26,456 bases of DNA from Paramicrosporidium saccamoebae KSL3 (GCA_002794465.1 MTSL01000187.1:8098-34553), one strand, 5' to 3'; positions 113 through 25,100 are shown, counted from the stretch's first letter. Translations and numbers: made by a program. The notes: a model not told the origin generated them from the letters alone.

Positions 113-1985
113 TTATTTAAAGTTTTTCAGATACCGCATGAACGTTGTAGGGGTAAGGATAGAGTCTCCGCCAACAAAAAAGTCGCGCTTCAAAGACGAT
201 GAAAGCTCGTAGGCACTGCGTATCTCTGAATAAGTGACACCACCGATCACATAACAAAAAACTGAGCCAGCAGTGGAGGAGGAGGTGACAGTAGGCTTTG
301 CCCGCAGGGATGTTGCAGCGGCACGACCAACAGCAGCAGGACCAACGTCGCCTTTGATGGCAGGAAATTCGAATTGGTCGAGTTCCTCAAAGGCACAGTC
401 CTCCATGATGATCTGGAGGGCGGGATGGAACCGCGAGACATCATAGGCTGGCGGGTCGTCGAGACAGGATCGACGTTTGCTCCCTTTGGGACGGGCGGAA
501 GGCCGCTGGCGATGATTAGTATTGTCAGCCAACACAAGCAGTTGTCGCAACATGGCCGTGTCATCGGGAGACAAACGCGCATGTTCAAAGAGAGCACGCC
601 GCTCTGTATCAACCAGCTTTGATGGATTAGTCAGGAGATAGATGGCCAACAGCCGCGCCCGATCGACACTTTCCAAATTTTGACGGTCAATGATTTGGGC
701 CAAATCATGCCACATGTCCTTTATAGCATCGCCTTCATTGTCGACCCCGGTGACCATATTCTGTTCAATTCCGGCAACATCGATAAGCTGCTTGCGATCT
801 GAAGCGCCCAAACAATCTTGGGCAATAGACAGATGCAGAGCAAATTCGCTCTTCATCTCTTGGAATTCGCCAAGCGCCGACATTGTGTCCTTTAGCTCTG
901 ACAGCGATGTAACATCATTTCCCGACGCAGTTGTGCGTGACTTTACTGCAGCCTTGTTCTCTGTCAGGAATTTGTTGAAACGCTCAATAATCAGACTCGA
1001 GCAATCCGCAATATGGGCATGCCGCAGCATGAGCCAGAGGGGATCCCGCTCATCCAGACTGACCGTCTTTTGCTGAGGTTCTGTGGAGGTGGAAAAGGTG
1101 TACTCATAACGGGTACCATCGGGGCCCAATCCAATCAGATCATTGGCCATGGCCTGCACTGAAAACTCGCGAAGAAAGGGAGCAGCCAAATCCACAGTGC
1201 GATCTGTAATAATAAGAGTGGAGGCCTTTGTGGGACGCAGATCCAATTTGGCTGCGAGTTCTTCCAATTTTTGTTGAACCCGCACCGCAAGACGAGCGGA
1301 ACGATGATCCGCCACAGTCTTTCTATACCGAACACGTGGAAGTTCGCCCATGGTGACACAAGCTGCCGCAATCTGAGACGCCATTGCGTCCAACTCTAAT
1401 GACAATTGTGGAGGCTCCGGTCCGTTGGGGATCATTGGCGCAAAAATTTGAGAAAAATGTTGGGCATCGCGGGCTAAATGGAAACAACGACTTTCGGGTG
1501 CCACAAAATCCAAGTAAAGCTCCTGCAGAGTGGCCACGTGGGGAGCAACGGCCGTTTGGGCCAACTCATTCATCAGCGCCTGTGAGATCCCCGTGGTGAA
1601 GAGCAAATGCGCCTGTCCATACATTGGACCCGTCCTTCCAGACGCAAGCCGTTTGGTGGGAGGAGTAAAGTCTTTTCCAATATGCACAATGTTCTCTTTG
1701 CTGGCTCGCACAATATACACCGCCGACATCGCGGGATACGGCTGACGTCCAATGGTAATATTCTCCACCAAAAAAACGCCCACATCCAGGATTTCCGCCA
1801 TGCTAATGCTTGCGTCAATAATCTTGACTGTGGACATGTCCAGAATGATAATCTTTTGTCCACCCGTCACCGCCTCCACTGCCTTCAGCAACCCTACCGC
1901 GTGTTAAAATAGCAAAACAATCTGTACGACTTCGGACCGTCTCGCGGATAGACCCGGGAATCACTTTTGTCGTTTCTGTAGACAT
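113..1985 (-). CDS. SEC1: Sec1/Munc18 (SM) family syntaxin-binding protein, ~612 aa, 2 exons (1985-1928, 1893-113)
   Basis: The ORF has SM-family motifs (LILDxST, RxPYPxxxAVYI, DRTVDLAAPFLREFSVQAMANDL, YDVSRFHP, YVIGGVTYSEIRSAYEL, GGDSILTP). The track start at 1891 is TTG. A 34-nt intron 1927-1894 (gtacag...ttttaacacgcggtag) joins it to an ATG at 1985, giving MSTETTKVIPGSIRETVRSRLLKAV. Confidence 0.93.
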
Positions 1986-2284
1986 TCTTCCCCTAAGATG
2001 GTGTCACGGCCGTCTTCTTCACTGTCGTCGACACGAACAATGGAGAACCAATCATCGCCACATTTCAATATGCTAGAGTTCCGCCAATCACAATACCCCA
2101 AAATGTCAACAACTGTACTATTACTAGGGTCCTCTATGTGGCGTAGGGGATAAATCAGCTACATCCGATATAGCATCAAGGCAAGGATCCAACGAAAGCT
2201 AGTTTTATTAACTGTCAGCCTGATTTTATAGGGCCAGCCCCTTCATTGGATCCTCGCCTTAATTGTACATTAGACGTGGCTGAT

Positions 2285-3235
2285 TCATCCCTTGTGGGAT
2301 AGTTTTCCCTCCAGGAGAGCTTCCAGTGATTGAGCATCGTGGTCAAAACGTTTAATGCCATCTGCTAACAGGTCTGTAGCCATCGGGTCTTTGGCCAGTT
2401 CGGACTGAAAGGTTGCTTGGCTCACATGAATGACATCTTTTATAGTCTCCTCCTCCACTCCAACATTAATCGTTCTCGTGACAGAGGTGTCCATTCCCTC
2501 GAGCTGCTCAAGCAAGGCTGGGGAAATGGTTAACAGATCAATGCCAGCAAGTTGAAGGATTTGTCCGGTGGATCGGAAAGACGCTCCCATTACAACGGTC
2601 CTGTAATTGTGCTTTTGGAGATAGGCGTAAATGCGCTTCACAGACGACACTCCCGGATCGACGGAAAATTCATCGCCTCGACGATTATACCAATCTGTAA
2701 TGCGTCCAACAAAGGGAGAAATCAAGGTTGCACCGGCCGCTGCCGCAGCTGCTGCCTGCACCAGGGAAAATAGCAATGTGACATTGCAATGGATTCCCTC
2801 CTCTTCCAGGATGCGCACTGCTTGGATTCCCTCCCAAGTAGCGGCAATTTTGATTAGGATGCGAGCACGGTCTATTCCATTTTCTTCGTACATGGAAATT
2901 AACTTTCTCGCCTTGGCCACCGTGCCTTCAGTGTCATATGAAAGACGTGCATCCACCTCTGTCGACACCCGTCCCGGAATAATCTTGAGATATTCAGTGC
3001 CAAAGTTCACAAGCAACCTGTCCAAGGCCTCTGCTGACTTGGAGCTGGTAGACTGCTGCTTGGCATACTCAATGGCCTTATCGATAAGACTGGAGTAGGC
3101 AGGCAATTTGGCAGCCGACAAAATAAGGGACGGATTAGTGGTGGCATCCTGTGGTTTATATTTCCGTGCAGTCTCAAAGTCTCCCGAGTCGGCGACAACA
3201 GTCGTCAGAGTTTTTAGTCCTTCCAACGAATTCAT
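2285..3235 (-). CDS. TAL1: Transaldolase, 316 aa
   Basis: Motifs VVADSGD, DATTNPSLIL, GRVSTEVDARLS, ILIKIAATWEG (Schiff-base Lys), ISPFVGRI and VMGASFR. The likely start is the ATG at 3235 (MNSLEGLK), not the track start at 3304. Confidence 0.97.
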   Translation of the reverse strand: MNSLEGLKTLTTVVADSGDFETARKYKPQDATTNPSLILSAAKLPAYSSLIDKAIEYAKQQSTSSKSAEALDRLLVNFGTEYLKIIPGRVSTEVDARLSYDTEGTVAKARKLISMYEENGIDRARILIKIAATWEGIQAVRILEEEGIHCNVTLLFSLVQAAAAAAAGATLISPFVGRITDWYNRRGDEFSVDPGVSSVKRIYAYLQKHNYRTVVMGASFRSTGQILQLAGIDLLTISPALLEQLEGMDTSVTRTINVGVEEETIKDVIHVSQATFQSELAKDPMATDLLADGIKRFDHDAQSLEALLEGKLSHKG

Positions 3236-3319
3236 ATGGTTAGTAAGGTGATTGGCTGACTCGTTATTGAGAATTGTGAAGAATTTGATAAAAAGTTGGA
3301 TCACAAATTGGTAATAAAC

Positions 3320-3403: not shown

Positions 3404-3460
3404 GCTTTTCTCCCCCGCCCACGCACCGATTTAATGCAAAAAAACTATACTCTTTTCGGG

Positions 3461-4306
3461 ATGAATTCCTTCTTGGGACGGCGGCTCTTTCCGTTCCGCA
3501 GCATAGTGAGTATCTCTGGACGAAATGAATTTACCGTCCGGCATAGACAGCCAGGTTCAGATGGACCATTGTCCAGCACAGATACAAAGCCGACTGCAAT
3601 GCGTCCAACATTGCTCCGCCATCAGCGTCAGACTGCTACGCCAGAAGTTGCGACTAATGGAGAGGAAACTATTAACAGGGAAGCTGTGCGACGGAAAACA
3701 TCTCCCTTGGAGGCAGTGGCAAATGCATCTTCCATTTCGGGACTGGTAGTGCGCTTATTAAAGATGCGGGTGATCAAAAATATGACAAAGAATGGAAAAT
3801 ACGCTCGTTTCAGCTCTTTGGTGGCGGTGGGGAATGGACGCGGAGCAGTCGGCGTGTCTCATAGCAAGGCCATTGCCGCTGCAGATGCAGTCTCCAAGGC
3901 AACAAAGCAGGCAACTCGTTTAATGGAACATTTTCCCCGCTGGCAAGACCGGACACTTTTCCATGATGACATTGTCAAGTTCCAGGCGACCATTTTGATA
4001 GTCCGTCCCGCAGCACCAGGTGCAGGTCGTCGATGTCATCCGGCAATTTCAGAAATCTGTCGCTGCATGGGGATTAAGGACATTTCCGCCAAAGTGCATG
4101 GCAGTAGACACTCAATGAACGTTGCAGAAGCCTTTCTCATGGCCCTACGGAGACAAAAGACTCCTGAAATGGTTGCCCAAGAGTCTGGCATGCGCATAAT
4201 TGATGTTTTAAAAGTTTACCAGGAAGGCTGTGAGGAACTCTCGCGGACCCTTAGATCAGAGCGATATTCCACCTTGGATCTCAAAAGACAATGGAACAAC
4301 CAATAA
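3461..4306 (+). CDS. MRPS5: Mitochondrial ribosomal protein uS5m, ~281 aa (alternative ATG at 3434)
   Basis: S5 domain: RVIKNMTKNGKYARFSSLVAVGNGRGAVG, RTLFHD, RPAAPGAG, ISEICRCMGIKDISAKVHGSRH. The N-terminus is Arg/Ser-rich and presequence-like (MNSFLGRRLFPFRS). Confidence 0.9.
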   Translation: MNSFLGRRLFPFRSIVSISGRNEFTVRHRQPGSDGPLSSTDTKPTAMRPTLLRHQRQTATPEVATNGEETINREAVRRKTSPLEAVANASSISGLVVRLLKMRVIKNMTKNGKYARFSSLVAVGNGRGAVGVSHSKAIAAADAVSKATKQATRLMEHFPRWQDRTLFHDDIVKFQATILIVRPAAPGAGRRCHPAISEICRCMGIKDISAKVHGSRHSMNVAEAFLMALRRQKTPEMVAQESGMRIIDVLKVYQEGCEELSRTLRSERYSTLDLKRQWNNQ

Positions 4307-4424: not shown

Positions 4425-5318
4425 TTATGATTGCTGCTCTTCTTCCTTGAGAGACAGAATGTATCGGGGCGGAACGGGCCGTTGAGGCACCTCATCGTCA
4501 GAAAACTTGACCAAAAAGTCCTTTGTTTTCTTTCTCCTTGTTGGAGTGCTGATGACTGTGGCAGGGTACAGACACGTCGTTCCAGGGAAGAGTGCCAACA
4601 CCTGCTGTTTGGGCTTTACGCTCTCATCAATTGAATCAGCAAGTGGACGCACCTTTTCCTCATGAACAGTATATCGAGTCTTCACTCCTCCTTTGGTGGG
4701 AGATCCATTTTCTCCCTCTGCATCTTCAATCTCATATGAATTCTCCTCTGGAATATATCGCAAAATGGTTCCCAAGATCCAATCCTCCTGGGTTGCTTCA
4801 GCATCCACCAGGCAAAGCATGGCCACCTCTGTCCCGACATTTAAAACCTCCATAGCGGACGGCATCTCCAAAGGAATCTCCATGGCGTCCACAGATGGAG
4901 AATCTTCAATCACAATCTCCTCCTCCACCGCCAGCTCTAACTCATTCTCCACTATCGGTTCCTCCACCGGTTCCGGTGCAGCAGGGCTCACATCTTGGTC
5001 AACATCCATGAAAATTTCCTCCTCTATCACCGTTTCAGACACAATCTCCTCCTCCGGCCTCTTTTCCTCGGCCTCTTGCATTTGCTCCCGGACCCTCCTG
5101 CTAGCCTCATTGCTCACAGTCTGAAGAAGTGTTGCACTGTCCAAAGCAGTCTCATAGGCTCGCAGTAATTTAACGACGCCATGTTTTGAAACCATTTGAT
5201 CCTTCTCAGCCAACCTTTCGTGTAGCTTTTGAAGCTTACGAAACTGGTGGTCATGCTGTTGGTATTGCGACACTACCCTACCTATTACTAAATTTAGTTC
5301 CTCAATAGAATCATTCAT
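4425..5318 (-). CDS. SGF29: SAGA-associated factor 29 (tandem Tudor, H3K4me reader), 297 aa
   Basis: N-terminal coiled coil. C-terminal tandem Tudor: EVAM...DWILGTI...YEIEDAE...VLALFPGTTCLYPATV...FLVKFSDDE...VPPRYIL. Confidence 0.88.
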   Translation of the reverse strand: MNDSIEELNLVIGRVVSQYQQHDHQFRKLQKLHERLAEKDQMVSKHGVVKLLRAYETALDSATLLQTVSNEASRRVREQMQEAEEKRPEEEIVSETVIEEEIFMDVDQDVSPAAPEPVEEPIVENELELAVEEEIVIEDSPSVDAMEIPLEMPSAMEVLNVGTEVAMLCLVDAEATQEDWILGTILRYIPEENSYEIEDAEGENGSPTKGGVKTRYTVHEEKVRPLADSIDESVKPKQQVLALFPGTTCLYPATVISTPTRRKKTKDFLVKFSDDEVPQRPVPPRYILSLKEEEQQS

Positions 5319-6370: not shown

Positions 6371-6375
6371 GTGCG

Positions 6376-6399: not shown

Positions 6400-6854
6400 A
6401 TGCTTTTCTACATCTTTGCTGTCGCGTTCCTGTGGGGTGTCACAAATCCTCTAATCAAAAAAGGCAGCGCAGGGCTCGAAGAGCTGAAAGATAGCCCAAA
6501 ATACAAGTCAAAGTCGCTTTTGAAACGACTCGTCCTGGACCTGCGATTCCTAGCGACCACATGGCAATACACGCTCCCGCTCCTGCTGAATTTAGCGGGC
6601 TCGGTTTTATTCTTCTATTCTCTCGGTTCAGTTCGTATTCACAATCTTGGTTGTTGATAGTAGAACTATTACTGCTTGGACCGTTGACAAATGCGCTGAC
6701 CTTGGTCATTGGAACTCTTACAGGCGTGACTATCGGAGATCCGTTGCCCAGCAAAAGTACTGTATTTTGGCCTGTGTAAATTCTAGAACAGTTTGGAGGG
6801 ATATTATTAATTCTAGCTGGAGTTACACTATGCTCACTAAATCCATCTTTGTGA
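6400..6854 (+). CDS. TMEM234: TMEM234-family small multi-pass membrane protein, ~131-132 aa, 3 exons
   Basis: AVAFLWGVTNPLIKKG and YTLPLLLNLAGSVLFFYSLGS...PLTNAL match the family pattern. Intron 1 is about 6635-6660 or 6635-6663 (boundaries ambiguous). Intron 2 is 6757-6786 (gtactg...ttctag). The last exon reads KQFGGILLILAGVTLCSLNPSL*. Confidence 0.82.
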
Positions 6855-6891
6855 AATTCATCTTCATATACACTTTGACATGATATCATTT

Positions 6892-7308
6892 TTAAACATA
6901 TTTGGATCGGTGGGGATGTTGAGTCAACTGTGGAGATCCGCCTTGCGACTTGTCATGTGATTCTCTAAACGTATCTTTGATTCTCTCCATGAGCGGGACA
7001 TCAGGATCCGCTTGCAGACGAACATTGTGCTTTTCGATCGGAACTTTAGTCGTCTCGTCAAGACTCTCCTTGCTGGACTCCACACCAGAGACAATAGAGT
7101 CTTTGGCTTGGTCGGCATATGAAGGATTTCTCGGCGTAGGCTCCGTGGTCATGTCATGCAATCCACCACGTATCCCCTCTTTGCCCTCCACCGTCGTTCC
7201 CATGACTACTTGAGTTCCATGGCGAAGCCCTTCCACGGCACCATGGAGAGTCTCACTCACCGTTTCAGCTGCGCGGTTCAGCATACCTGTCTCGCCTGGT
7301 CCTGGCAT
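6892..7308 (-). CDS. Small hydrophilic orphan protein (hydrophilin/LEA-like composition), 138 aa
   Basis: ATG-initiated ORF rich in G/E/T/S/H, with no Cys or Trp. It shares the motif ETxxGxxxGLxHG with the neighbouring gene. Function is inferred only. Confidence 0.7.
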   Translation of the reverse strand: MPGPGETGMLNRAAETVSETLHGAVEGLRHGTQVVMGTTVEGKEGIRGGLHDMTTEPTPRNPSYADQAKDSIVSGVESSKESLDETTKVPIEKHNVRLQADPDVPLMERIKDTFRESHDKSQGGSPQLTQHPHRSKYV

Positions 7309-7600: not shown

Positions 7601-8002
7601 TTATACGGAAGGAGTCTCCCCCTTAGCCTTTGATGCAGATTTGGTCGCGACTCGGTGGCTATGATCAGAAAATTCATCTGCTGATCCCACTGCTCGCAAC
7701 GGTCCTGCCGCGTTGCCATTCATTGTAGGTTGTTCATAGATATACGTCTTTCTTCCGAATGAAGCTAAACAACATATTAGTCACTCCATGAAAATCTAAC
7801 AGCGTCTTTCGCGAAATGGGGAAAGCTCTTTCACTCGATTCTCTGTTACCGGCGCATGTTTAATCGCTTCAGGAGATCCTTCGCCAATCTTGAGTCCGAA
7901 GGCAATCTCTACTCCGTGAGAGAGACCACCCGAGATCCCCTCTGCCGTTTCCTTAAGTCGGCCGGTAATGGACAAGTCATTGTGATACTCCTTCGACGCC
8001 AT
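7601..8002 (-). CDS. Small hydrophilic orphan protein, 121 aa, 2 exons (8002-7801, 7764-7601)
   Basis: ATG at 8002. A 36-nt intron 7800-7765 (gttaga...gactaat...gtttag) removes the TAG and opens an exon absent from the track: SSFGRKTYIYEQPTMNGNAAGPLRAVGSADEFSDHSHRVATKSASKAKGETPSV*. Confidence 0.68.
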
Positions 8003-8959: not shown

Positions 8960-9040
8960 TGTTTCCTTGGCGAGCCAATCACATCCGACTGTTTTATCAC
9001 TGCCGTCGATTGGAGAATTCACTTCAATCATCGCGCAAGG

Positions 9041-9114
9041 GGTCCTTTAGCTCAGTCGGTTAGAGCGTGGTGCTAATAACGCCAAGGTCGACAGTTCGAT
9101 CCTGTCAAGGACCA
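9041..9114 (+). tRNA. trnI-AAT: tRNA-Ile, anticodon AAT (IAU after editing)
   Basis: Acceptor stem GGTCCTT/AAGGACC, D arm GCTC/GAGC, anticodon arm TGGTG-CTAATAA-CGCCA, T arm GACAG-TTCGATC-CTGTC. A T4 tract follows at 9116-9119. Confidence 0.97.
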
Positions 9115-9512: not shown

Positions 9513-10402
9513 TTATTCATATTTGCGTCTTGGCGGCAATGACAGCGTTTCGCCTTCGGGAGTGACATATGCGGCAGCCACGCCTCCGTCGACAAGAAAG
9601 TCAGTGCCAGTTATGAAGCTGGATTCGTCGCTTGCTAGAAACACTGCAGCTTGAGCAATCTCATGAGCCTCGCCAAATCTACCCATGGGAATGTGGACCA
9701 GTCGGCGTTGCTGCTTCTCTTCCGTATTTAAATGAGCCATTAGCAGTGGAGTCCGCAGCGGACCTGGACATAGCGCATTGATCCGAATATTCTCACGAGC
9801 ATGAATAACTGCCAGCTCTCGTGACATGGCCAACACGGCTCCCTTTGATGCCGTGTCTATCATGGTCAGACAACTTTACAAGTAGTAAATACAGGCAATC
9901 TGCGGTGTTGCAGCACCCAGTCGTGCCACAAAGGACGCTGTGTTTATGATAGACCCTCCGCCTGCTCGACGCAGGGCAGGAATTCCGTGACGACAGCCGT
10001 AAAAGACCCCTTTGGCGTTAATGTTGATTGTAAGATCCCAAATCTGGTCCTCAGTATTGGTGGCGCCGCCATCATCAGGGTGCATGATCCCCGCGTTATT
10101 AAGCAGGATGTTAATCTTCCCCAAATGTCTCTCGCCAAACGAGATCATCTCAGAAACAGACTTATCAGAGGACACGTCGCATTGAACACAAAACAGCTTG
10201 GAATCTGGGACAATTTCCTGCACTTTGTTTAGGGCCGCCTGTACCGCCTCCGCGCTAATGTCCGCCATGACAACGCTTGCTCCCTCTAGTGCAAACGCAA
10301 TGCTTGTTTCGAATCCTATCCCACTATACAAATCAATTACATACTAAAATTAAACCCAGCCGCGCCGGTGATGACTGCGACTTTGCCATCAAGTCTTCCC
10401 AT
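9513..10402 (-). CDS. Classical short-chain dehydrogenase/reductase (FabG-like), 273 aa, 3 exons
   Basis: Splicing introns 10355-10324 (32 nt) and 9892-9857 (36 nt) restores the cofactor motif VITGAAGGIG and the catalytic YTASK. NNAGI, NALCPG and VDGG are also present. Substrate unknown. Confidence 0.93.
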
Positions 10403-10542: not shown

Positions 10543-11582
10543 ATGGATCGCACAAAACATCGCCTGCTCATCGGTGGGAAACCCGAGCAATATTATGTTT
10601 TGAAGCGACTTTTAAGAAATTCAATGGCCGATGGGCGTCAGGTTGTGACAAGGAGGCTCTTTGACTATTTGGAACAGACAAAATGTCCAGACACTTTGTT
10701 CCTGTTTCAGGCAGGTCTCGAATTGTATTTTGAGTCGGAAGAATTTGAATTGCGGACACTCAGATTTATCCAGACCTACGGAAAGAAAGTCCCAGACGAG
10801 GTATAGCCGTCTCCATGTTGTCACTCTAGGCCGTGTTCTTCTTGGAGACTGCTACCAGTTATTACGTTAAACATGGCCGCCTAAACGAGGCATATGAAAA
10901 TCTCAGTGGATATCTCAGCGCCCCTCCGTACAACTCATCTGCAGGCTTACATGGTTACGCTGGATGGATTGCCACAGAACTTGCGGTAAAAGACAAGCGC
11001 TCCGCCGTGAGAGAAAGGTATTTTCGTCGCGCATTATCCCATTTTGACGAACATTTGCGTGTTCTACAAAATGAAAGCCTGGATATGGGCTTTTTAAATT
11101 CACATGTACACGTTTTGATAGAAATCGGGCGAGTCGATGATGCAAGGACTCTCCTCGAATCTCTGATAAAAAGTCACGAATTGAACATTTTCGTGAGAAT
11201 CAAGCTGTATGAGCTACTTTCAGATAGCTATTCATCTGAACGTGCCGTGTTACGGGAATGTATATTTGGTCTCTTTCGGCTGTTGAAAAAGACGGGTTCG
11301 TCTTTTCAGGCCATCGAACATTCGATCAGTCAATATCTAAGGCGCCAACTCTCCAATGTCCACATGAAAATTGACGAATTTGGGCAATATTTATTTATCT
11401 TTGCATACGCCGTCTGTCTCCAAATCTCCAGAACTTTTACCGATAATCTGGAGCAGCATCATACTCTGCTGGAAACTTGTCGGCTACAGTTTGCCTTTAC
11501 TAGTCTCGATCGGCAGTGGAAGATCTTGGCCAACGAATTCCCGTCAATAATTAGAAACAGAGAATTAAAAGCAATTACATAG
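10543..11582 (+). CDS. Helical/TPR-like protein, ~336 aa, 2 exons; possibly Rrn11/TAF1A-like RNA Pol I core-factor subunit
   Basis: A 29-nt intron 10801-10829 (gtatag...ctctag) joins the two track ORFs in frame (KVPDE|AVFFLE). The segment AYENLSGYLSAPPYNSSAGLHGYAGWI recalls fungal Rrn11/TAF1A-like proteins, from memory only. The gene is likely real; the product call is weak. Confidence 0.5.
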
Positions 11583-11595: not shown

Positions 11596-14500
11596 TTAAT
11601 TTACACTATCAACATGCTCTTGAGGGACGGGCAATCCGATTTCAACTATGGCACCGGTAATGGTTGAAACGAGCAGGCTCTTCGTCTTCCGTCTAATGGA
11701 CAATGCACAAGGGATATCATCCAGGGCAACTGTTGATTTTTTGAACGATCCCGCATGGATAAAGTGGATAAAGCCGCGGCGATCGGACCCAATAAGAAAG
11801 CCATCGTTCCAGAGCAGACGGCCAATTAATACTGACGAAGAGCTACTCCACTGCTGTGCAAGTTCAATGTTGGCCTGGTTGGTGAGCAGTGAAAAAATAT
11901 CAAGTCCTCCACGACATGTACTCACTGCAACTAAACGTGATTCGGGATCCACAGAAACAGCGAGGATATCACTTCTCCAACACTCTGTCAATAAAAAATC
12001 CATCGATTCAGCCACTGTATTTACCTCAATAAGATGAAGTTCTGAACCTGCCGCAACAAGAACGCGAAACTCACCATCATTCACAACGTCCACGACCGAC
12101 ACGGCATTGACTTTGTGAGGGAAGCCTGCATCGCACGAAAAAATAAGCTGTGATACACCGCCCCGTGACAGTTGTTGCGAAGGTAAAGACTGTCTCCTTC
12201 GCGCATTGCGGTCAATAAAATTGGGTGGGATTTTTAGGATGCGCACCTGCCCGACATTCTGAATCTGCAGTCCAATAATAATGAATCCACTATCCCCAAG
12301 CAGGGCAGCGCAAGTCACTATATCACCGGTTGCAAGAACGCTTTTGAACAATAATTCTTCGTCATTAAGACCATACACTTCAACAGCCGGAGCATTGTTA
12401 GCCCATGAACCTGATGAAATGAATGACTCCTGCTCAGATCTGCCGGGACTGCTGACTACAATTAACTGGCCTTGTTGCGGCCGGTGCATGATAAACCGTG
12501 CACAGCAAACATCTAAGAAAGCTTCGATTCTCGGGGTTACTTGCAAGGATGTAGTAAAAGTACCCATTGACTCGTGCTCAACAACGACAAATCGAAAGAG
12601 CGACTCGTTGGAATTAAGAACTGACCATCGCACCAGGTGATCTGCTCGATGAAGCACAGGCGTCAGGGAGAACACTCCATCCTCCGTCTCGTCCAACAAA
12701 GAGGCTTGTCCCGATAACGCAAAAATACAGGCCGACAGCCCAGAAAGTCGTGTTCTCGACAGCTGGACCGGCCGTTTGCCAGCATGAACCGAAGCAAGCG
12801 GCCTGATGGACACACTGTCCTCCTCTTGTTTCACCCCAAGTACAATGAGCCTTCCATCTCGACCACCGAGCGCCAGTCGAGCTCCATAAGCATCTTTGAA
12901 AAATTGCATCTCATTCACAGCAAAATCGCAGTCCTCCAAGACATATGTGCAAATCTGATCGACGCGGTTAGAACCGTCATCAAAGTATACATTCCACAAA
13001 CAAATTTCCTCATTATAGGAGGCCGCGACAATAAATCCAAAGCAATATTTTTGCGGATTTGGTGGTCCACTTGTACCGAGAGGATAGACAGCAAAAGAGG
13101 AGGTACAAGGTGGCATCGCAAGTTGTAACGAGAGTATAACGGACGGTGCACCACGAGTCGTTCGGCACTGAAATATTTCGATGAAACCCGATCTCAGTGC
13201 GAATACGTGGTCATTAATAATGGCGGCCGAAAAAAAATCCAAATCAGCGCCGCCAGTGTCCAGATCCCGTTTCCAATCAGCAAGAACTTCACCGGCAACC
13301 TGGCCAACATTGCTTTTACAGATAATCACTCTATCTGGGCACACCTGTATAAGAAATGAGCCAGCTTCAGTATTTTCAATAGCCAATGTGCGTCTTCTCA
13401 AATCCACACCATAAAAATCGGTAATATCCTCAAAAAGGGACTCGCCAACCAGACGCAGGAGGATTGTGCTTTTTACAAATGATACTGCCAAAATGGAATG
13501 ATGCTTGTCGCTGTTGTATTCTCGTAACATCCATATTCCTGTACACCCGCGAAAAATTTGGTCTGATCTCATTTCCGTGCACACGGGAATATTTTCTCGA
13601 AATAGCCCAACGATGGACGAATCACCAAATCCGCACGCTACCAAGCAGTCGTCATCAAAACCTTTAGAAGATGCACAGATCATGTCCAGGACAGTATTCG
13701 GCATCTGATTGCGATGCAGAATTTCTATGGTATTGGCTTTAAATTGAAAGGCCAAAATTCCTCTAGAGGGCGAGCTTCCCAATATCATGCCGTTTGGAAA
13801 AAAGCATAGAGATGTGCACCAACACTTCAAATCAGTGGAAAATATTGCTGTAAATGTGCAAGCTCCATGTCGTAGACTATAAACCTGGAGTTCGCCAGTA
13901 TTCCAAGAGATCGCAAACATTGTTTCGCCATCAATTGAGATTGCATTAGAAACTGACTCCACAATCCTAACTGGATCAACTGTGCGCGAAGTGGGAATGA
14001 GCTGGGACGTTGGCGAATCGATTTCTGCGAGCTCTACATTTATTCGAGCGACCGATGGTCCCTAAAATCAAAAAGAGCGAACGGCTTACATTGATCAAAA
14101 ATACTGCATCGTCGGGTCCGGTAAAAAATTTGTTCGGGTAAAAAAATCTCCTGAGAACCATGATATGGTGTATTACTTTTTCAGTAATATTCACACATAT
14201 TACGCGAGAAAGACCTGTTTTGTCACTAGTCATTAATATGCAACACAAGAAGCAATACCAAACTGTTGCTACCATTAAAAAAAGGACGGATCCGATCATC
14301 TTCAATTGTAAAGCCCCGATACCAAATGGCCCAATATCAATAATGTTTTGCTGTCCGGAGCTCACATCAATGATGGCGATAAACCTTTCGATTGATGAAA
14401 TTGCAACAATATTTCCACTACTCAATAACGAAATGGGAAGGTATAGGTACAGTGAACAAGCTTCACCAAAAAATTTAAACGGGATGGTTTGCTTCAGAAT

Positions 14501-14801
14501 AACCTCGCTTCCGTTGCATATGAGCCCCAATCCATCTTTACATACAATAAAAATTTCTGGAGAGCTCGTTGAGAGCAAAAGAACAGAATCTAGGTCGTAC
14601 ACATGACGAACCGTAAACTTCCCGTCAGCCGAGCAGTCACACACATGAACACTTCCATGCTATCGGGAAATCAAATACCAACTTTGTAATTACGTATTGG
14701 ATCGCAAACGTGCACTCTTGGAGATGCACGAGGCGTACAACCGATGAGCTTGGCTGAATTGTCCTTAATTCCCCCGGTGCAGGCAATGTCGTAGATACCA
14801 T
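11596..14801 (-). CDS. MMS1/DDB1/SF3B3/CPSF160-superfamily multi-beta-propeller protein, ~1040 aa, at least 3 exons
   Basis: The segment TVLDM...LVACGFG...GCTGIWMLR...HHSILAVSFVKSTILL...FEDIT...RTLAI...LIQV matches the MMS1_N region. Introns are 14693-14660 (34 nt) and 14089-14062 (28 nt), with a possible in-frame 33-nt intron at 14258-14226. Start is the ATG at 14801 or 14834. Confidence 0.75.
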
Positions 14802-14832: not shown

Positions 14833-15963
14833 ATGCATTCCAGTTGGACGCATATATCGTTTCGGTCCCAAAAGGCCGCCTTTTATTTTACCGCGGGACG
14901 GAGAAATATTACTGTATTTTCTGGTATACAACCCTCCGGTGAATTGCATCTTGGGAACTACTTTGGGAGCTGCCGATTTTTTTTAGACCATCAAAAATCG
15001 AGAGAAGTAAGTGGTCGACGCATAGACAGGTTATTGCTTTCAATTGTGGACCTGCATTCCTTGACATTCTCGGGCCGACAAGATCTCCATAATCAAATCC
15101 ACAAAATGGCAGCCATGCTGCTTGCTATAGGGATCGACCCCAAAGACACGATTCTTTTTCGCCAGTCTGATGTTACGGAACATGCAGTTTTAATGTGGCT
15201 ACTATCTTGCAGAGCATCTGTGAGCAGACTGAAACGGATGATACAGTGGCGGGTATAGATTTATCCATGCTAACTAATCATGCCAGGAAAAATGTGACTC
15301 GCTTGGAGAAAACATGGCCCTTTTGTCCTATCCGTTGCTTCAAGCAGCCGACGTTTTGCTTTACCGGTAACCTCATTTCCGCTTATAACCGATAGTGCCG
15401 ACGTAGTACCCGTTGGTGCAGACCAAAAGCAGCATATTGAGCTGATTTCTGAACTTGCACAGAAATTTAATAGTGCGTATCATGCAAAGGTTTTTCACGT
15501 ACCGGAGGGCCATTATTGCCAAACAAAAATCAGGAGTCTCCGTGACCCTGCTGCAAAGATGAGCAAATCTGATCGTCTTCCCGACGCTTGCATTTTTCTC
15601 TCCGATGGGCCAGAGGTAATCAAGAGAAAGATAATGCGTGCATTAACAGATTCTGGCGAAGATATTACATTTGATGAGTCGACTCGTCCTGGCCTGGCAG
15701 CATTGTTATCACTATTTGCTCTTATGCAAAACAAGACGCCTGACGCTGTAGCGCACGAATACGCTCGAATCAGAGGACTTTGCCAATTCAAAGTAGATCT
15801 GGCCACATGTCTAATAGAGTACCTATCACCATTTCGCAATGCCTACTTGATGAACATGAGTGACCCGGGACACATTGAATCGGTCCTTGCAGAGGGATCC
15901 CGCACCGCCCGTCAAATAGCACAAAGCAACCTTGAACATGTAAAGAGCGTAATATATTCTTAG
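14833..15963 (+). CDS. MSW1: Tryptophanyl-tRNA synthetase, mitochondrial/bacterial type, 355 aa, 3 exons
   Basis: FSGIQPSGELHLGNY (HIGH motif), YPLLQAADVLLY, VPVGADQKQHIEL and KMSKS. Introns are 15253-15286 (34 nt, branch TGCTAAC) and 15367-15395 (29 nt). Confidence 0.96.
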
Positions 15964-16335
15964 CTCGCCATAAAGACATTTATAATTACTAGCTGCACAT
16001 GTGCACAAACATGCCTGTCCTTCAATTATTGCATCAACGCTTGACTCTTAAATTTGCTATAAATTATGCCGCCTGAATCAGCCATCACAGAAATTTATGC
16101 TGCTGCATGTATTTTTGCGTAATAATGCAACTTTTATTATGCGGCTAGTGACGCATGCATTATTAGTGGGGTTGATGTGGGTGCACACTATATCAGGATT
16201 AGCTGTTACCACTAGATGGGCCAAGGTCGCCTTTACTATTTAATTCATGAAACAAGTCCCATTGTTGTTATATATACATACTATCTCACAGCTACCATGT
16301 TCCTGACTAAAAAGTACCACGAGCAAATCAAAAAG

Positions 16336-16408
16336 AGGCCCTTGAGAGGATCGAACTCTCGACCTACTCCTTACTAGGGAGTCGCAACTACCACTGTGCT
16401 AAAGGGCC
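16336..16408 (-). tRNA. trnT-AGT: tRNA-Thr, anticodon AGT (IGU after editing)
   Basis: Reverse strand: acceptor GGCCCTT/AAGGGCC, anticodon arm ACTCC-CTAGTAA-GGAGT, T arm GAGAG-TTCGATC-CTCTC, U discriminator. A T5 terminator follows at 16334-16330. Confidence 0.96.
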
Positions 16409-17483: not shown

Positions 17484-18531
17484 CTATGGCAAATTACTGT
17501 TTGTGGACAAAAAATCTAAATGCGTGCCATATAGAGCCGATAGAGGAGATCTCACCGAGTTGCTCATAACTCCAGTTGTAGCAGGCAGCATATCCGATGG
17601 CGATCCAGTAATGTCAAAGGATGAATATTGTTTGGGCGTACCGGCTCCAATAAATACGTCTTGGAATACGGCTTTCTTCTCAAGAGAATCATTGTAGTTT
17701 GAGCCTCCAAACGAATCCGAAGACGAATCAAGGACAGGCATTGATAGGTCTGTTGGAGAAGGTAGCAGGTCCCCACCGAACGACTGTCCTCCTGAAGCAG
17801 TCATTTCCATCATTAGGGGAAAGAATGCGTTTGGATCTGACATCATATTTTGGTCAATGTTCATTGACAGCGGGAATATAGGACGCGGCTCTAATCTCGG
17901 CCGAGGCTTCAATATCGGTAGGCGCAGCGCAGAGTCTGAAGGAGCTCTTTGTTTAAGATTCACGTCAAATGTTATCGGATGCTGATATACAGGAAATGAT
18001 TGTCTCCGAGCAGACACCACTTTTGATAAGTCACCCCGGTGGCCCAAGATACTCGCATGTTCATGAACAAGCTTCCAGTAGGATCCCTTTCCTGGTGTCT
18101 TACTAGACCTCGCAACCTTTTGGAACGCTTTGTTAAGGGATAGGTTGTGTCGAATAGAGTTCTACAGATTATTTTAGCACAAGTCGACGTATATGTACCT
18201 TCCAACCCTGTCCTGCAGTCCTGAAATACGGATAGTGTTCCTCAACAAATTCATAAATGTCACTTAAGACTAGCTGCCTGGCTGGGCAGCTCTCGATGGC
18301 TTCAGTGATCAACGTTGCATATGATATGGGGGGACGGACAGGACGATGGGTAGAGTCAGAATCGGTTGGATTGCTATCCGGAGTTCTGGACTCGCTGCTT
18401 CCCGAAGAAGATTGCAAGAGAGACTCGCTGATCTCCAAACTTGAAGGTGATGAATCTTCTATGTGTGGAGGAGTTGCCGACTCTACACCCGATTCCTCCA
18501 TTCGGGCCTTTGATCTTCTCCTACCCTTCAT
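17484..18531 (-). CDS. Forkhead-box transcription factor without an FHA domain, ~336 aa, 2 exons
   Basis: RPPISYATLITEAI...LVLSDIYEFVEEHYPYFR...GWK|NSIRHNLSLNKAFQKV...PGKGSYW after removing a 37-nt intron at 18198-18162. Confidence 0.93.
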
Positions 18532-18810: not shown

Positions 18811-19670
18811 ATGCTTGGAGGAGAAGTCCGAGAATTTCTTATAGAGCTCGAGTCTCGGTTTCCGGATTTCCACCTTTCTTCAAGTGGGAATGAATGGCTC
18901 AATTCCCTGGAATTTGAGAGAAAGCACACCGAAATTGCATTTCCTCAAATAGTTTCAATCCTGAACAGCCTCGCTAGCCCAGATAGCACATTCCCTGCCT
19001 CCCAGCCGGGTCATTTTTCTGGTGAAACGGAGAAAATGTACATGTCAAGGATCAGCGAGCTGGAAAACGACCTTGCAAAACGCAGGAGTGAATGCGAAGA
19101 GCTTGTACAGCACATGTCCCAATTAGAAGTTGATTTATCTAGAGCCAATCACCACATAAGCGACGTAATTAATGGCCTGCGCTTTTCTGATATTTTTAGC
19201 TGCAACGGGTAGAAAAGGCACGCGAAAGAATGCTCTTGAGAGAATCATCTCCTAAAAAGTCTGCCGATAAGGCCCTTGCCACGGGGGGTGCGAAAAATGT
19301 AGAGAAACTGAAAGGTATGGTGCAATCTCTCCTGCACACCACGCAGCTGCTCAATAAGGATCGAAGCGAGTTGTACAGTATTCTTTTACAGGTTCTTCAG
19401 GGGGGACAAGTTTCTCAGCGAGTATTCTCAAAAAGATTTGGCTTAGAAGATGAATTAGTGGAAGTTTATAACAAGATTGTGTCTACCAGCTATACAGGCG
19501 GTTCAATGGAGAATACAGAAGATCTCGCTATCATGTCAAGGCCGTATTCTTTTGTTATTTACACGTTTTTTGTGTGGATATCCGGAATTCTAATGGCCGT
19601 TCTAGCATACGAGTACATTATTTGGTCCGATTTTTCGTTTCGGTTTCCTTCCTCCTCTGCCATATACTGA
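18811..19670 (+). CDS. Coiled-coil protein with a C-terminal transmembrane anchor, 274 aa, 2 exons
   Basis: A 35-nt intron 19165-19199 (gtaatt...ttttag) joins the two ORFs in frame (HISD|LQRVEK). It has a heptad-like segment (RISELENDLAKRRSECEELVQHMSQLEVDL), a hydrophobic segment (YSFVIYTFFVWISGILMAVLAYEYIIW) and a 14-aa tail. Confidence 0.78.
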
Positions 19671-20031: not shown

Positions 20032-21183
20032 TCATAAGACTATGCGTTCCAATTCACTAATTCGGTCTTCTTCCTCTTTCAACACCATTTGATCAATAAA
20101 CTGGTCCAGTGATTTTCCGCCAAAAAAGGCCTCCAGTCCATGTATTGACACGCCAAGCCGATGGTCCGTGATCCTCGCCTGTGGAAAATTGTAAGTTCTA
20201 ATCTTATCAGAGCGTTCAGCTTGGCCAATTTGAGATTGTCGTGATGACTTTCTTGATGCATCCTGAGCAGATCTTTGCCGGTCATGTAGTTTTACCCTCA
20301 ACATTTCCATGGCCCGTGCTTTATTCTGCTGTGCGCAGCGTTCTTCTTGCACGGCAATGGCTGTGCCTGTCGGGAGATGTGTAATCCTAACTGCACTGTT
20401 CGTCTTGTTGACATGCTGACCTCCTGGCCCACTGCTTTTGAAAAAGTCGATTCGTAAATCCTTCTCCGATATATCAATCACGACGTCAGTGGACTGTGGC
20501 AAGAGTGCAACTGTGATAGTACTTGTGTGAACACGGCCTTGTGCATCCGTTTTGGGTATCCTCTGAACCCTGTGGACGCCGCTTTCATATTTTAGACGCC
20601 GAAATACTCCCTTCCCCTCAATGCTTATCATGGCTTCTCTAACTGCATCTCCTTGCTCTTCGGAAGCACTCACAACACGAAAAGCCCATCCTCGTAGAAC
20701 GCAGTATCGCTCATACATTCGCAGCATTTCTCCCGCAAACATGGCGGCTTCGTCTCCTCCTGCTCCGGATCTAATCTCCATAACTGCATTGCCATCTTCT
20801 TCCGGTTTCGGGGCTATTAAACAGCGTCTCAGCTGCCCCTCAAGCTCTTCCAAAACAACTTCCTCTCTTTTCATCTCCTCACCGGCCAATTCTCTCAAAA
20901 CTGTATCTTTATCTTCCAAAAGCATCCGATGCAGCTCATCCATATTTGCTTTTGCACTCTTCCATCTTCTAAAAGTCGTCGCCAGTTCTTCAATGTCTCC
21001 AATTTGCTTTCCAATTGACGAAATTTCCTGTGCGCTTAATTCAGTCTCAGAAAGCCGAGTGTTCAATAGCTGATATTTTTCATATATCTTTGAAATGTGT
21101 GCCTCGGTTTTTAGTGTGAGGAGTCGTCCATAGAATCTCTTCCTTGGCTGAAATTGTACGAACCAGACACGAATATGGCACAT
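20032..21183 (-). CDS. MRF1: Mitochondrial peptide chain release factor 1 (RF1/mtRF1a type), 383 aa
   Basis: EIRSGAGGDEAAMFA, YESGVHRVQRIPKT (PxT motif), SSGPGGQHVNKT (GGQ motif), RSDKIRTYNFPQARITDHR. The N-terminus is presequence-like. Confidence 0.97.
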   Translation of the reverse strand: MCHIRVWFVQFQPRKRFYGRLLTLKTEAHISKIYEKYQLLNTRLSETELSAQEISSIGKQIGDIEELATTFRRWKSAKANMDELHRMLLEDKDTVLRELAGEEMKREEVVLEELEGQLRRCLIAPKPEEDGNAVMEIRSGAGGDEAAMFAGEMLRMYERYCVLRGWAFRVVSASEEQGDAVREAMISIEGKGVFRRLKYESGVHRVQRIPKTDAQGRVHTSTITVALLPQSTDVVIDISEKDLRIDFFKSSGPGGQHVNKTNSAVRITHLPTGTAIAVQEERCAQQNKARAMEMLRVKLHDRQRSAQDASRKSSRQSQIGQAERSDKIRTYNFPQARITDHRLGVSIHGLEAFFGGKSLDQFIDQMVLKEEEDRISELERIVL

Positions 21184-21217
21184 CTAATCATTAACCGTTT
21201 TCTTTAATTCAGCGGAA

Positions 21218-22108: not shown

Positions 22109-22139
22109 TCAATCTAGTAAGAATTACAAAATTACAGAA

Positions 22140-25100
22140 TTACGGAATTGTGTCATTGCTGCCTCTAGGTGCCTGTGTTACTGTTTGTCTCAGCTCCTCC
22201 AGCAAAAGGCCGACATCGTCACTGGCGGACATTGCCGATAGCTGTCCCGTAGTTGCTGGTATAGTAGTAGGGGTAGAAATGGTTTGAACCGGCACGGTAG
22301 ATGTTTGGATCGTTGCGGCTGCGCGCGCAGCGGCCTCAACTGCAGCTAGTTCGGATGTGGGCGATGTTACACTATGCGACCATGGAGATTTGAGTTGGCT
22401 CCAGAGACTGTTCATGACACCTTTTATCTCACTAACGCCAGGCGACGACAGAGTTGTTTCTGCTTCCAACTTGATAGTTCTCTGGATCCCACCGGAAAGA
22501 AAGCTCTTGACCGCATCGAAACCTTGCACACATAATATGAATTCTTCCAAGCTCTGTTGTCTCTGCTCAATTTTCAACAACTGAGAGATCCCAGCCGTAA
22601 TATCCTCTTCCAGAGTTAGTTTAAGCAGTGCCTCGGTCATGCTAATGATTCCTTCATATGTTAATGATTCAGAGTCGCAGAATGCGCCAAATAACAATTC
22701 GCAATGTCCTTGCCAATCCAGCGTCACTAATTTATCCATCAGACACACGAGCTCCGCGAACGTAATTCGATCTTGCCGTTCCCGAGAAAACTCTTTAAAT
22801 AGATGTTCACAATACACGAGAACAGCAGAGGGTCTTTGTGGGGTATTCCCCCTCCGGGATCGATCGGGTAAGCGCCAGGTGGTGGTCGCAGACATAAAAG
22901 AGATGAAACAGTCGAGGTCACCGCCTTGAGGGAGGGCGGCGGCTGCACTTGAGTAGTATAGTGCTTTGCTAAATTCGCCGTAGAAAAATGTTACAGCGTC
23001 ACGGGAAATACTAAGCTTGCAAGAATCTACGACATCTCTAACTGTAGTTTTTCTAGTGTAATCTCCAATATTTTGAATAACCTTTAACTGATGTTCCTTT
23101 CGAAGCACCTCGATTCTATCCATTGTGACTACATCAGAAAAATCAGAGTGCGCCAATTTCAAAACGTGCTGAAACCTGGACATTGGACGATCCTCACCAG
23201 CGAATGTTTCCACCTGATCCAAAGAGCACATAAACTCACGCAGTATGCGAACCATTTCGCCATCTTCATAAACATCCATCAAGATTGACGAGTTGCACTT
23301 TAAAACTTCCAATGCAAACCGAAAGAGAAACGGAACACCATCGAGGAAGAACCAATCCAAAATCCTTAGCGCCTGCTGTAGCGGCATTGATGACAAATAG
23401 AGCGTCAAAAACCAGGGAGTCGTAGCGACAGAAAGTTGGATATCATTTGCTTTAAAGTGGGCGGATAATAGGGGCAGGTGTCTCCGGACGAGGATCTCAA
23501 AAACTTGTTGATCAAGGATGGCTCCCCACATGTTGGTGGAGTAATATCCAGGTAATGCTCTTCCACATAGATATTTTAGTAGCCAGAATGCTTGCTCCTC
23601 GTTTGCAAATATTAGCAAAACTGAAGTCACGATATTCATTGCCTGGCAGTAGCCCAGCTCGGGATCATGCCATGCATACGCCTGGAGTACCCTTCGAAGC
23701 ATTTGAATTCCTTCGTCCTTTTGATATGCAGGATATTCCGGCAGACTCCTATGACAAGGTCAGATGCTAAAAAGGACGAGTACCGACAAAGATCTTTTTC
23801 AATCTCCTCCAACGCCAAGGAACTCTTTCCTTCATTCAAGTCCAAAGTTTGCTTGTACAGAGAGGGTGAAAAAAATCGAGAATACAGCGATCCACAGCAA
23901 ATCTCCCACATTTCTCCTCGAAGTCTATTTGGGAGGCCAGCGCGTACAAGTCTTGCAAAGTATGGGGCCTTTAACATGGAAAAGTTCCGACCATACTCTG
24001 AAAAGTAGCCACCCCAATATTCATATAAGATAGTCTGCATCTTTTTACTTGGAAGGGTCGCGTGATTAGAATCAGTGGACTCGCCAGGAAATCCAAATAT
24101 AGGTCCCAAACCCTCGGCAACAACGGCACATCGCTCCTCGCCCATTATGAGTTGCTCGGATGGAAGAGTGGCCAGAAAAGGACCCAGCTGTTCTTTGGCC
24201 AACTTTGCGTTATCAAGAAGAACTTCTTTTAGTCGAAAGCAAAATCGATCACATTGTCTCACACTTCCACCCACGCTGAGATAGACTTTCTGATGGTGGC
24301 AGGTAGTTAGAGCGACTCCGTACAGTTCATCAGTGTTCTTTCCAGCTTCATTTTGTTGGAAAACCTTTTCCATACGACGGATCGCACAAGTTGGGATTGT
24401 AAGCCGCGTGTCTGTGGACGAAAAGAGTACAAATCGTCTTGTCAGAAAAAGCTCCCCACGGTAGATTTCATCTGGCCTGTGTTCCATCCATAACACACTC
24501 CACGACTGCTCAACGAGTTCCTCCCCTGGGGGAACATTAAATAAAGATTGGATGAGGACATCTTTTTTCTGTCTATCAAGGCCTTCCTTTAGTGTCGGGG
24601 TGCCGGTGACGTCGGTAGATGACAGGCTAGGACTTGACTGTGATAGATCTGATCCAGGCTCAGTGCGAGTGGTTCTCAATAGTCTATGGAGCGCCCTGTT
24701 CACCAACGATTGTAATAATTCGTAGGCTTCGTCGCGCCGGAAAAGGTTCGAAAACCTCAACTCGCGCCCTTCTGATGTCTTTACATAGACGGTGTCAGGG
24801 AGCAGGGTTTTCTTGGATCTTTCCTTTCTAATCTCGGTAATGTTCTTTAATTCAACCAAAATCTTGCTCTCAACTCCAAAAACATAGGAGTAATAAGCCA
24901 AGTAATGCTCAGAAATGTACATCCAGCCCTGACTAAGTAGGCCACCACCAGAGGAACACGAAAAATAATTAACGAGTCTCTCAGTGGCAGAGAGTGAAAA
25001 TGTTTGCCTGAATGCACGAGCCGTTGCTCTGAATCTCTCATCGCCAGCGGCTTCGTCCGTGCCAGCCACTTCCTCAGATACTTGGGCTTCGATTTTTGCA

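Follow-up and report, generated by a model that had tools for sequence, protein, structure and literature searches.

Introns of fungi are typically about 50–100 nucleotides (nt) long, with a GTRNGT donor that mostly carries a G at the fifth position (+5 G), a CTRAY branch site and a YAG acceptor (surveys such as Kupfer et al. 2004). We describe here 14 tiny introns, most of them of the form GTA...TAG and lacking the +5 G, in a 26,456-nt stretch of DNA from Paramicrosporidium saccamoebae KSL3 (GCA_002794465.1 MTSL01000187.1:8098-34553), the whole of which is referred to as the window.

Several described systems come close to this pattern. In Paramecium tetraurelia, the introns measure 18–33 nt (mean 25) and only GTA and TAG are constrained (Jaillon et al. 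2008, as summarised in PMC8997360). In Stentor coeruleus, they are 15–16 nt long, stringent conservation of the donor is limited to GUA, and the small nuclear RNAs (snRNAs) are canonical (PMC9505925). The donor of myxozoans and Dicyema is reduced from agGTaagt to "GTa" (PMC13644364). The introns of mikrocytids are 16–17 nt long and conserved in sequence (PMC10245619), and those of microsporidia are very few and have strong extended motifs (PMC6349667). Rozella allomycis has two S23 introns of about 30 nt without conserved 5' splice-site and branch-point motifs (PMC6349667); this is the nearest fungal-side precedent that we found. Entamoeba has acquired a new and strong donor consensus, which is matched by a changed U1 (bioRxiv 10.1101/2022.06.08.495308). 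We found no matching description in the literature of tiny GTA...TAG introns in early-diverging fungi, and the Paramicrosporidium genome paper does not mention introns. The window apparently provides the first fungal, moderately intron-rich case of this class.

The introns of the window

A sequence-only reading of the window had listed 14 introns by their lengths and donor hexamers. Searching for each hexamer at its length gave a unique sensible place every time, and all 14 introns were found exactly as given. They were compared with contigs that encode the closest proteins in the same gene order, from six related genomes: L001/L002 (NCBI GCA_047514055.1, SRR26965757), L003 (JGI 3300063079), L004/L005, L006/L007, L008/L009 and the more distant L011. 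The introns, with their orthologs, are the following.

1927..1894 (-): Sec1/Munc18 gene (ATG 1985, stop 113), 34 nt, phase 1, GTACAG...TTAAC...GGTAG; orthologous 39-nt intron in L004.
6635..6660 (+): TMEM234 intron 1, 26 nt, phase 1, GTATTC...GATAG; orthologs in L004 (32 nt) and L006 (36 nt).
6757..6786 (+): TMEM234 intron 2, 30 nt (a multiple of three, with an in-frame TAA), phase 1, GTACTG...TTCTAG; L006 ortholog of 37 nt, GTCACC...TGTAG, at the identical codon and phase by eye.
7800..7765 (-): small gene (ATG 8002, stop 7601), 36 nt, phase 1, GTTAGA...GACTAAT...TTTAG; L006 ortholog of 32 nt, GTTCAC...CTTAG.
10355..10324 (-): short-chain dehydrogenase (SDR) intron 1, 32 nt, phase 2, GTTTAA...TTGAT...TATAG; its removal brings back the Rossmann motif TGxxxGIG (ITGAAGGIG); orthologs in L006 (36 nt, GTATTT) and L001 (141 nt, GTGAGT).
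9892..9857 (-): SDR intron 2, 36 nt, phase 1, GTATTT...CTGAC...GATAG, with an in-frame TAA; its removal brings back the active-site motif YxxxK (IAYTASKGAV); orthologs in L006 (31 nt) and L001 (98 nt).
10801..10829 (+): TPR-like gene (10543-11582), 29 nt, phase 0, GTATAG...CTCTAG; orthologs in L001 (138 nt), L004 (40 nt) and L006 (34 nt).
14693..14660 (-): RSE1/DDB1/CPSF1-family intron 1, 34 nt, phase 0, GTAATT...TTGAT...CGATAG; by eye, L006 has a 25-nt intron (GTTACG...TTGAC...TTTTAG) in the same place, after ...Y and before xxSxHxCxxSxDG.
14089..14062 (-): RSE1/DDB1/CPSF1-family intron 2, 28 nt, phase 0, GTAAGC...TTGAT...TTTAG; L006 ortholog of 30 nt, GTAAAT...TTTAG, preceding the conserved GP..(V/I)..VESVSNA.
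15253..15286 (+): TrpRS intron 1, 34 nt, phase 0, GTATAG...CTAACTAAT...GCCAG, the sole non-TAG acceptor; orthologs in L006 (33 nt) and L001 (127 nt, GTAAGT); the open reading frame (ORF) of L004 is intron-free.
15367..15395 (+): TrpRS intron 2, 29 nt, phase 2, GTAACC...ATAAC...CGATAG; its removal brings back LLY(R)ADVVPVGADQ; orthologs in L006 (34 nt) and L001 (65 nt, GTAAGC), none in L004.
18198..18162 (-): Forkhead intron, 37 nt, phase 0, GTACAT...CTAAAATAAT...TGTAG; removal restores GWKNSIRHNLS; orthologs in L003 (33 nt), L006/L007 (39 nt) and L001 (91 nt), none in L008.
19165..19199 (+): coiled-coil/membrane protein gene (18811-19670), 35 nt, phase 0, GTAATT...CTGAT...TTTAG; L003 ortholog of 36 nt, GTATTC...TTTAG.
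23783..23749 (-): GRAM+TBC Rab-GAP (Gyp2/Mdr1-like), 35 nt, phase 2, GTACTC...CTGAC...CATAG; its removal brings back IEKDLCRSLP, the arginine-finger motif; orthologous 39-nt introns in L006/L007 and L008.

Frame and homology together show that all 14 predicted introns exist, at positions that are conserved across the six related genomes and with the signals that we describe below. Three of them (30, 36 and 36 nt) have lengths divisible by three but carry in-frame stops, and the lengths of the other 11 would shift the frame, so that none of the 14 can be coding; the spliced models are all open and free of stops. Five proteins, which cover eight introns, give one uninterrupted Pfam match across every junction. 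The match to adh_short_C2 is a single stretch of the spliced SDR (13-252 against profile positions 1-235 of 236), as are those to tRNA-synt_1b in TrpRS (24-291 against 4-268), to TMEM234 (6-126 against 2-112), to Forkhead (56-137) and to RabGAP-TBC. The motifs that are recreated at the junctions (TGxxxGIG, YxxxK, YPxLQAAD/VPVGxDQ, WKNSIRHNLS and IEKDLxR) bear out the claim of the sequence-only reading that removing the introns restores conserved motifs, and the Pfam matches, the open frames and the ORFs of the relatives all agree with it. A ninth junction is confirmed by the spliced N-terminus of Sec1, which aligns without gaps to continuous ORFs in relatives.

Each of the 14 introns has a counterpart of identical codon position and phase in one or more of the syntenic relatives. 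A junction-refinement script, in which all GT/GC–AG models were scored against the window protein, recovered 12 of them; for RSE1-like intron 1 and TMEM234 intron 2, the counterpart was confirmed by eye in L006. The intron-free ORFs of L004 (TrpRS introns 1 and 2) and L008 (Forkhead) are identical in extent to the window's spliced products, which they match exactly. The gene callers used for public collections split the SDR, TrpRS, Forkhead and GRAM-TBC GAP genes of relatives at exactly these introns. It is important to note that this evidence consists of reading frame and homology, and not of the motif, since the bare pattern GTAN(20-31)TAG (26–37 nt) is not enriched in the window (77 matches for about 63 expected).

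The script also returned in-frame "introns", mostly with GC donors, of lengths that are multiples of three and with a valid no-intron model; these are indels between orthologs and were discarded. An all-against-all scan for candidate introns was too noisy to be used.

The position of a few boundaries calls for comment. At the 3' end of TMEM234 intron 1, the window has a tandem acceptor (6655-6663 (+), GATAG/TAG, a NAGNAG), and use of the acceptor at 6663 would give an intron of 29 nt; homology speaks weakly for 26 nt (LE rather than Q), whereas the distance from branch to acceptor would speak for 29 nt. The least certain of the 14 predictions is RSE1-family intron 1, because the first exon is poorly conserved. 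No Pfam match was found in the small gene (8002-7601), whose intron has therefore no Pfam support. We saw no further introns in the window, where introns of 5' untranslated regions are possible. A 30-nt GTAATT...CTAG string at 22114-22143 (-) starts on the last base before the TAA stop of the TBC gene; if it were spliced, the stop would be replaced by a short extension, but it is probably a chance match.

Splice signals

The introns are 26–37 nt long (mean 32.5, n = 14) and all have GT...AG ends. At the donor, +1 G and +2 T are invariant, and +3 is A in 12 of the 14, the other two being GTT. The bases at +4 are A5/C4/T5/G0 and those at +6 are G4/C4/T4/A2. Only two donors have a G at +5 (GTTAGA and GTAAGC), the others having A, T or C. 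The last base of the exon is G in 6/14, and the mean match to the U1-pairing string CAG/GTAAGT is 4.7 of 9 positions (hand count). The extended donor consensus for pairing of +4 to +6 with U1 and U6, which is typical of U2-type introns although it does not strictly define them, is thus absent. A yTrAy branch motif (CTGAC, CTAAC, CTAAT, TTGAT or TTAAC) can be read in at least 10 of the introns, its A being located 6–13 nt from the 3' end and 21–27 nt from the 5' end of the intron. The introns have a GC content of 35.6% (162 of 455 bases, hand count), compared to about 46% for the window.

Re-reading the sequence gave the same numbers that the sequence-only reading had reported, of 12 GTA donors, of two donors with +5 G and of 13 TAG acceptors, the exception being the CAG of TrpRS intron 1. 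Its statement that exon ends show no compensating AG holds as well (two of the 14 upstream exons end in AG), as does that of a TRAY-like branch core close to the AG.

A +5 G frequency of about 0.75 is typical of fungi. The probability of observing +5 G in two or fewer of 14 introns is 3e-6 if the true frequency is 0.75, and 0.0065 if it is 0.5 (hand calculation), so that chance does not account for the shortage of +5 G. The 14% seen here is close to the background that is set by the G content of these AT-rich introns. The U12 donor RTATCCTT, of a class that is also marked by the TCCTTAAC branch site, is seen in none of the 14.

The A at +3 is not obligatory: the small-gene intron has GTT in the window (7765-7800 (-), GTTAGA) and in L006 (17870-17901, GTTCAC), and L006 also has a GTTACG (25 nt, 11468-11492) and a GTCACC donor (37 nt, 19162-19198).

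Short and long introns in related genomes

Many proteins of metagenomes and of Logan assemblies of public read sets are 60–93% identical to proteins of the window. The clade was sampled from soil, water and activated-sludge metagenomes and from one unannotated NCBI assembly; L010, which comes from an activated-sludge metagenome, hints at the habitat. Gene order is conserved between the window and L001, L003, L004, L006-L008 and L011, despite proteins that are 30–80% identical. It runs Yip1, GRAM-TBC, Bot1p, RF1, two unknown genes, Forkhead, ETF-beta, TrpRS, RSE1-like, TPR-like, SDR ... TMEM234, HSD ... SGF29, mS5, TAL, Sec1.

The introns of L003, L004, L006/L007, L008 and L011 are 25–40 nt long. 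Among 22 of them (hand counts), 19 donors begin with GTA, six have +5 G, and 21 acceptors are TAG. The donors are GTATTC, GTAAGA, GTACTG, GTAAAG, GTACGA, GTACCG, GTATAA, GTAACA, GTAAAT (twice), GTAGCG, GTTACG, GTACGC, GTATTT, GTAGGC, GTTCAC, GTAATT, GTCACC, GTACAT, GTAGGT, GTAGGA and GTATTA.

L001 is different. At six of the window's positions it has introns of 65–141 nt, mostly with CTAAC branch sites; the donors (GTGAGT, GTAAGA, GTAAGT, GTAAGC, GTGCGT, GTAGGC and GTAGCA) have +5 G in 6/7.

JBCAWG010001111.1 4064-4154, 7112-7573, 13525-13662 and 15466-15563: L001 introns with GTRAGT-type donors.

The frequency of +5 G in the short introns, 8/36, differs from the 6/7 of L001 (Fisher P about 0.002, hand-computed). 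By the identity of ETF-beta, TrpRS and Forkhead, L001 on the one hand and L004, L006 and L008 on the other are at about equal distances from the window. Signal degeneracy thus accompanies miniaturisation within one syntenic clade. Orthologous introns have unrelated bases at +4 to +6: the Forkhead intron has a different donor in each of four genomes (GTACAT, GTAAGA, GTAACA and GTGCGT). This suggests that these positions evolve neutrally in the short class.

The intron content of the clade also varies. L001 has a third TrpRS intron that is absent from the window. Yip1 has an intron of 38–40 nt in L006 (313-350, GTACCG...TTTTAG) and L008 (916-955, GTACAT...TGTAG), and its ORF is continuous in the window, which indicates that the intron was either lost in the lineage of the window or gained in the others. 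In L011, whose Sec1 is 39% identical, introns of 28–30 nt are located at other positions, in the transaldolase and RF1 genes (3702-3729 (-) and 2135-2164 (+)).

How the introns may be recognised

We argue that these are probably ordinary U2-type introns that have shrunk to near the lower size limit in a very compact genome, and that they are read by intron definition by a conventional spliceosome. As in U2-type introns, the ends are GT–AG, removal restores the frame and the protein, a branch motif is present, and the positions are homologous to those of the canonical introns of L001; as in the Paramecium-like class, the lengths fall in a narrow range below about 40 nt, and only the first three and the last three bases are conserved. 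Excision by the spliceosome is predicted from the frame, the homology and the signals.

In the mechanism that we propose, selection at the donor would be retained on G1, U2 and usually A3 only, while +4 to +6 and the end of the exon would drift freely. The whole intron would be read as one unit, the cues being a GUA donor, a yUrAy branch site at a roughly constant distance of about 21–27 nt from it, a UAG acceptor after another 6–13 nt, and an interior that is rich in AT (about 36% GC for 46% overall). Length and spacing would then substitute for the pairing of +4 to +6 with U1 and U6. A retained intron would cause a frameshift or bring in an in-frame stop, and surveillance such as nonsense-mediated decay (NMD) could remove these errors. 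The conventional spliceosome, the replacement of U1/U6 pairing by spacing and the role of NMD are what we infer from the pattern. The sequence-only reading had also proposed that the introns are defined largely by length and branch point, which it took to imply an altered spliceosome: the former part is plausible, considering the tight 26–37 nt range, the yTrAy motif and the near-invariant TAG, with a recognition logic that we likewise infer, but an alteration of U1 or U6 is not required by the data.

Several points weigh against our interpretation. The branch motif is weak or ambiguous in three or four introns (6635-6660, 6757-6786, 10801-10829 and partly 18162-18198). Regarding NMD, for which a deficit of stop-free multiple-of-three introns would be the mark in the Paramecium-like class, all the multiple-of-three introns of the window have an in-frame stop (3/3, n being only 3), but at least two multiple-of-three introns of L006 (SDR intron 1 and TMEM234 intron 1) are stop-free, so that the argument is not clean. 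The sample is small, with 14 introns in the window and about 29 in relatives. The proposal of a conventional spliceosome is made by analogy and from L001. Either short or long introns may be ancestral in the clade, depending on how L001 branches relative to the genomes with short introns.

A different hypothesis, which we find unlikely, is that the spliceosome itself is altered: the 5' end of U1 or the ACAGAGA box of U6 would have changed, or U1 snRNP (small nuclear ribonucleoprotein) or factors that proofread the 5' splice site would have been lost; the loss of +5 G would then be a consequence of the changed machinery and not of relaxed selection. This would be consistent with +5 G being at background in about 36 short introns of six genomes, and with a mean complementarity to the canonical U1 5' end of only about 4.7 of 9. 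The coevolution of snRNA and introns in Entamoeba (bioRxiv 10.1101/2022.06.08.495308) and the reduced spliceosomes of other compact genomes (PMC10245619) are precedents. Against this, positions +4 to +6 offer no substitute consensus with which a modified snRNA could pair, and orthologs differ there. The introns that L001 has at these sites begin with canonical GTRAGT donors, which implies that recognition is canonical somewhere in the clade. The GUA-only donors of Stentor coexist with U1 ACUUACCU and U6 ACAGAGA (PMC9505925), and a Syf1 gene in L004 and L011 shows that part of the machinery is present. No U1, U2 or U6 snRNA gene was found in the window and about 115 kb of eight related loci, where Rfam scans gave tRNAs only. 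It may also be that, in the whole clade, the choice of the 5' splice site is independent of U1/U6 pairing beyond GUA, for instance via the loss or remodelling of U1 snRNP or of proofreading factors for the 5' splice site, and that L001 kept or regained long canonical introns; we regard this as quite doubtful.

The boundaries could have been mis-called, the true canonical donors being a few bases off, or some introns being in-frame coding insertions. The intron calls are made from sequence, the acceptor is ambiguous at 6660/6663, the first exon of the RSE1-like gene shows poor conservation, and chance yields many GTA...TAG strings in this size range. Such errors are nevertheless very improbable, since 11/14 lengths shift the frame and the other three introns contain in-frame stops, invariant motifs are reproduced to the residue, the spliced products match intron-free orthologous ORFs without gaps, and no alternative in-frame GT was found at the well-anchored junctions. 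A non-spliceosomal origin is the least credible hypothesis and is effectively refuted; it would include eliminated DNA, assembly or sequencing errors, frameshifts in pseudogenes, and U12-type or non-spliceosomal introns. The shortest eliminated sequences of Paramecium do overlap 26–37 nt in size. However, all 14 introns have GT...AG and not TA...TA ends, no U12 donor is seen, most have a branch motif, and longer canonical introns occupy the same positions in L001. An assembly artefact is ruled out because the pattern recurs in independent NCBI, JGI, ENA and Logan assemblies. As to eliminated sequences of the ciliate type, which go with a host that has nuclear dimorphism, the nearest named homologs indicate that the host is a fungus. 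In protein searches, the identity of ETF-beta to its homologs from Coemansia, Mortierella and animals is 57–60%, and that of Sec1 to homologs from Calcarisporiella, agarics, Endogone and Thamnocephalis is about 30%; the spliced TBC domain is 50–53% identical alike to the Gyp2-like proteins of Mucorales, chytrids, Basidiobolus and others. These homologs are fungal but distant, from which we conclude that the host belongs to an early-diverging fungal lineage in which the searches gave no annotated close relative. Membership of Rozellomycota would be a guess, to which the activated-sludge origin of L010, the abundance of Rozellomycota in activated sludge and the introns of about 30 nt in Rozella (PMC6349667) lead.

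Implications

Gene finders that are trained on introns of about 50–100 nt with GTRNGT donors will break genes of this kind. The syntenic contrast between introns that are about 30 nt long and degenerate in most genomes, and 65–141 nt long and canonical at the same positions in L001, is useful for asking whether the loss of signals follows miniaturisation or drives it. If the independence from U1/U6 pairing were true of the whole clade, these genomes would form a natural syntenic series for the study of the coevolution of intron length, signal strength and spliceosome composition. Taken alone, the case is not a demonstration of a new mechanism of splicing.

Other features of the window

The window has a GC content of about 46% and is gene-dense, with about 20 protein genes and two tRNA genes, or about one gene per 1.3 kb; the 14 introns are distributed over these approximately 20 genes. 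The protein genes encode Sec1/Munc18, transaldolase, mitoribosomal S5, SGF29, homoserine dehydrogenase, TMEM234, a LEA-like repeat protein, the product of the small unknown gene and that of another unknown gene, the SDR, the TPR-like protein, the RSE1/DDB1/CPSF1-family propeller protein, a mitochondrial-type TrpRS, ETF-beta, the Forkhead factor, the coiled-coil/membrane protein, mitochondrial RF1, a Bot1p/mS45-like protein, the GRAM+TBC Rab-GAP and Yip1. Three other features are listed here.

9041-9115 (+): tRNA-Ile(AAT) gene, in a short spacer.
16335-16408 (-): tRNA-Thr(AGT) gene, in a short spacer.
11596-14801 (-): RSE1/DDB1/CPSF1-family gene, fast-evolving (31–43% identity between relatives).

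A tRNA gene directly follows ETF-beta in the window and in three relatives (L003 4786-4858, L006 10016-10088 and L008 10855-10927), and is thus syntenic.

The RSE1-family protein has a good Pfam match to the second propeller of the family, and no C-terminal domain of the CPSF_A type was detected in it. In a comparison with proteins of the PDB, its match to SF3B3 extends over about 100 residues and has an E-value of only about 1e-5, and DDB1 scores almost as well. We considered that the gene might encode a divergent SF3b130, a member of this family that would have been relevant to the spliceosome, and dropped this idea as the similarity to SF3B3 is too weak and DDB1 comes next; the candidates are SF3b130, DDB1 and a Rik1/Mms1-like protein. 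The likely start codons of the divergent RSE1-like (14801 (-)) and TrpRS (14833 (+)) genes are about 30 nt apart, and an alternative ATG of the RSE1-like gene at about 14834 would overlap the start of TrpRS, which implies a minimal or overlapping bidirectional promoter.

The gene of the LEA-like repeat protein (6892-7308 (-)), which has the motif ...PTPxNPSYxDQAK..., consists of a single exon, as does its ortholog in L006 (18177-19019). The protein has 138 residues in the window and 280 in L006, because the number of repeats differs. ORFs of 140–155 amino acids at 6455-6889 (-), 2631-3098 (+), 4693-5124 (+) and 20621-21073 (+) oppose TMEM234, transaldolase, SGF29 and RF1, respectively; these antisense ORFs are almost certainly not genes. 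Last, we note that L011 has a T-box gene at 8662-9459.

Comparison with known systems

Like Entamoeba, the window has atypical donors without the standard +5 G context, but it lacks any consensus beyond GTA. Typical fungal introns share with those of the window the GT–AG ends, the CTRAY-like branch near the 3' end and intron definition, and the window's intron positions are common to other members of its clade; it is L001, however, that typical fungal introns resemble, and not the window. Microsporidia and mikrocytids also combine short introns with reduced genomes, and microsporidia are related to fungi, but the introns of the window are frequent and degenerate in sequence.

In myxozoans and Dicyema, the reduction of the donor likewise goes with miniaturisation and compact genomes, with independent, convergent origins; these are animals, however, with a median intron length of about 22 nt, some 3' signals consisting of AG only and a branch signal that is a weak run of A (PMC13644364), whereas TAG and yTrAy are well kept in the window. 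Stentor has the same GUA-only donor, with the branch A at a fixed distance from it (PMC9505925). Its introns are half as long as those of the window, and its snRNAs have been examined and are canonical.

The comparison that the sequence-only reading had made with the short introns of Paramecium is apt, the constraint being on GTA and TAG only in both. According to the summary in PMC8997360, the introns of Paramecium are also very short, within a narrow size range, AT-rich inside, recognised by intron definition and such that their retention leads to premature stops; they differ in being shorter and far more numerous, in the very AT-rich genome of a ciliate. Those of the window measure 26–37 nt, in a fungal genome of 46% GC, and have a clearer yTrAy branch motif. 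The window and its relatives apparently represent an independent fungal instance of the syndrome that is known from ciliates, myxozoans and dicyemids.

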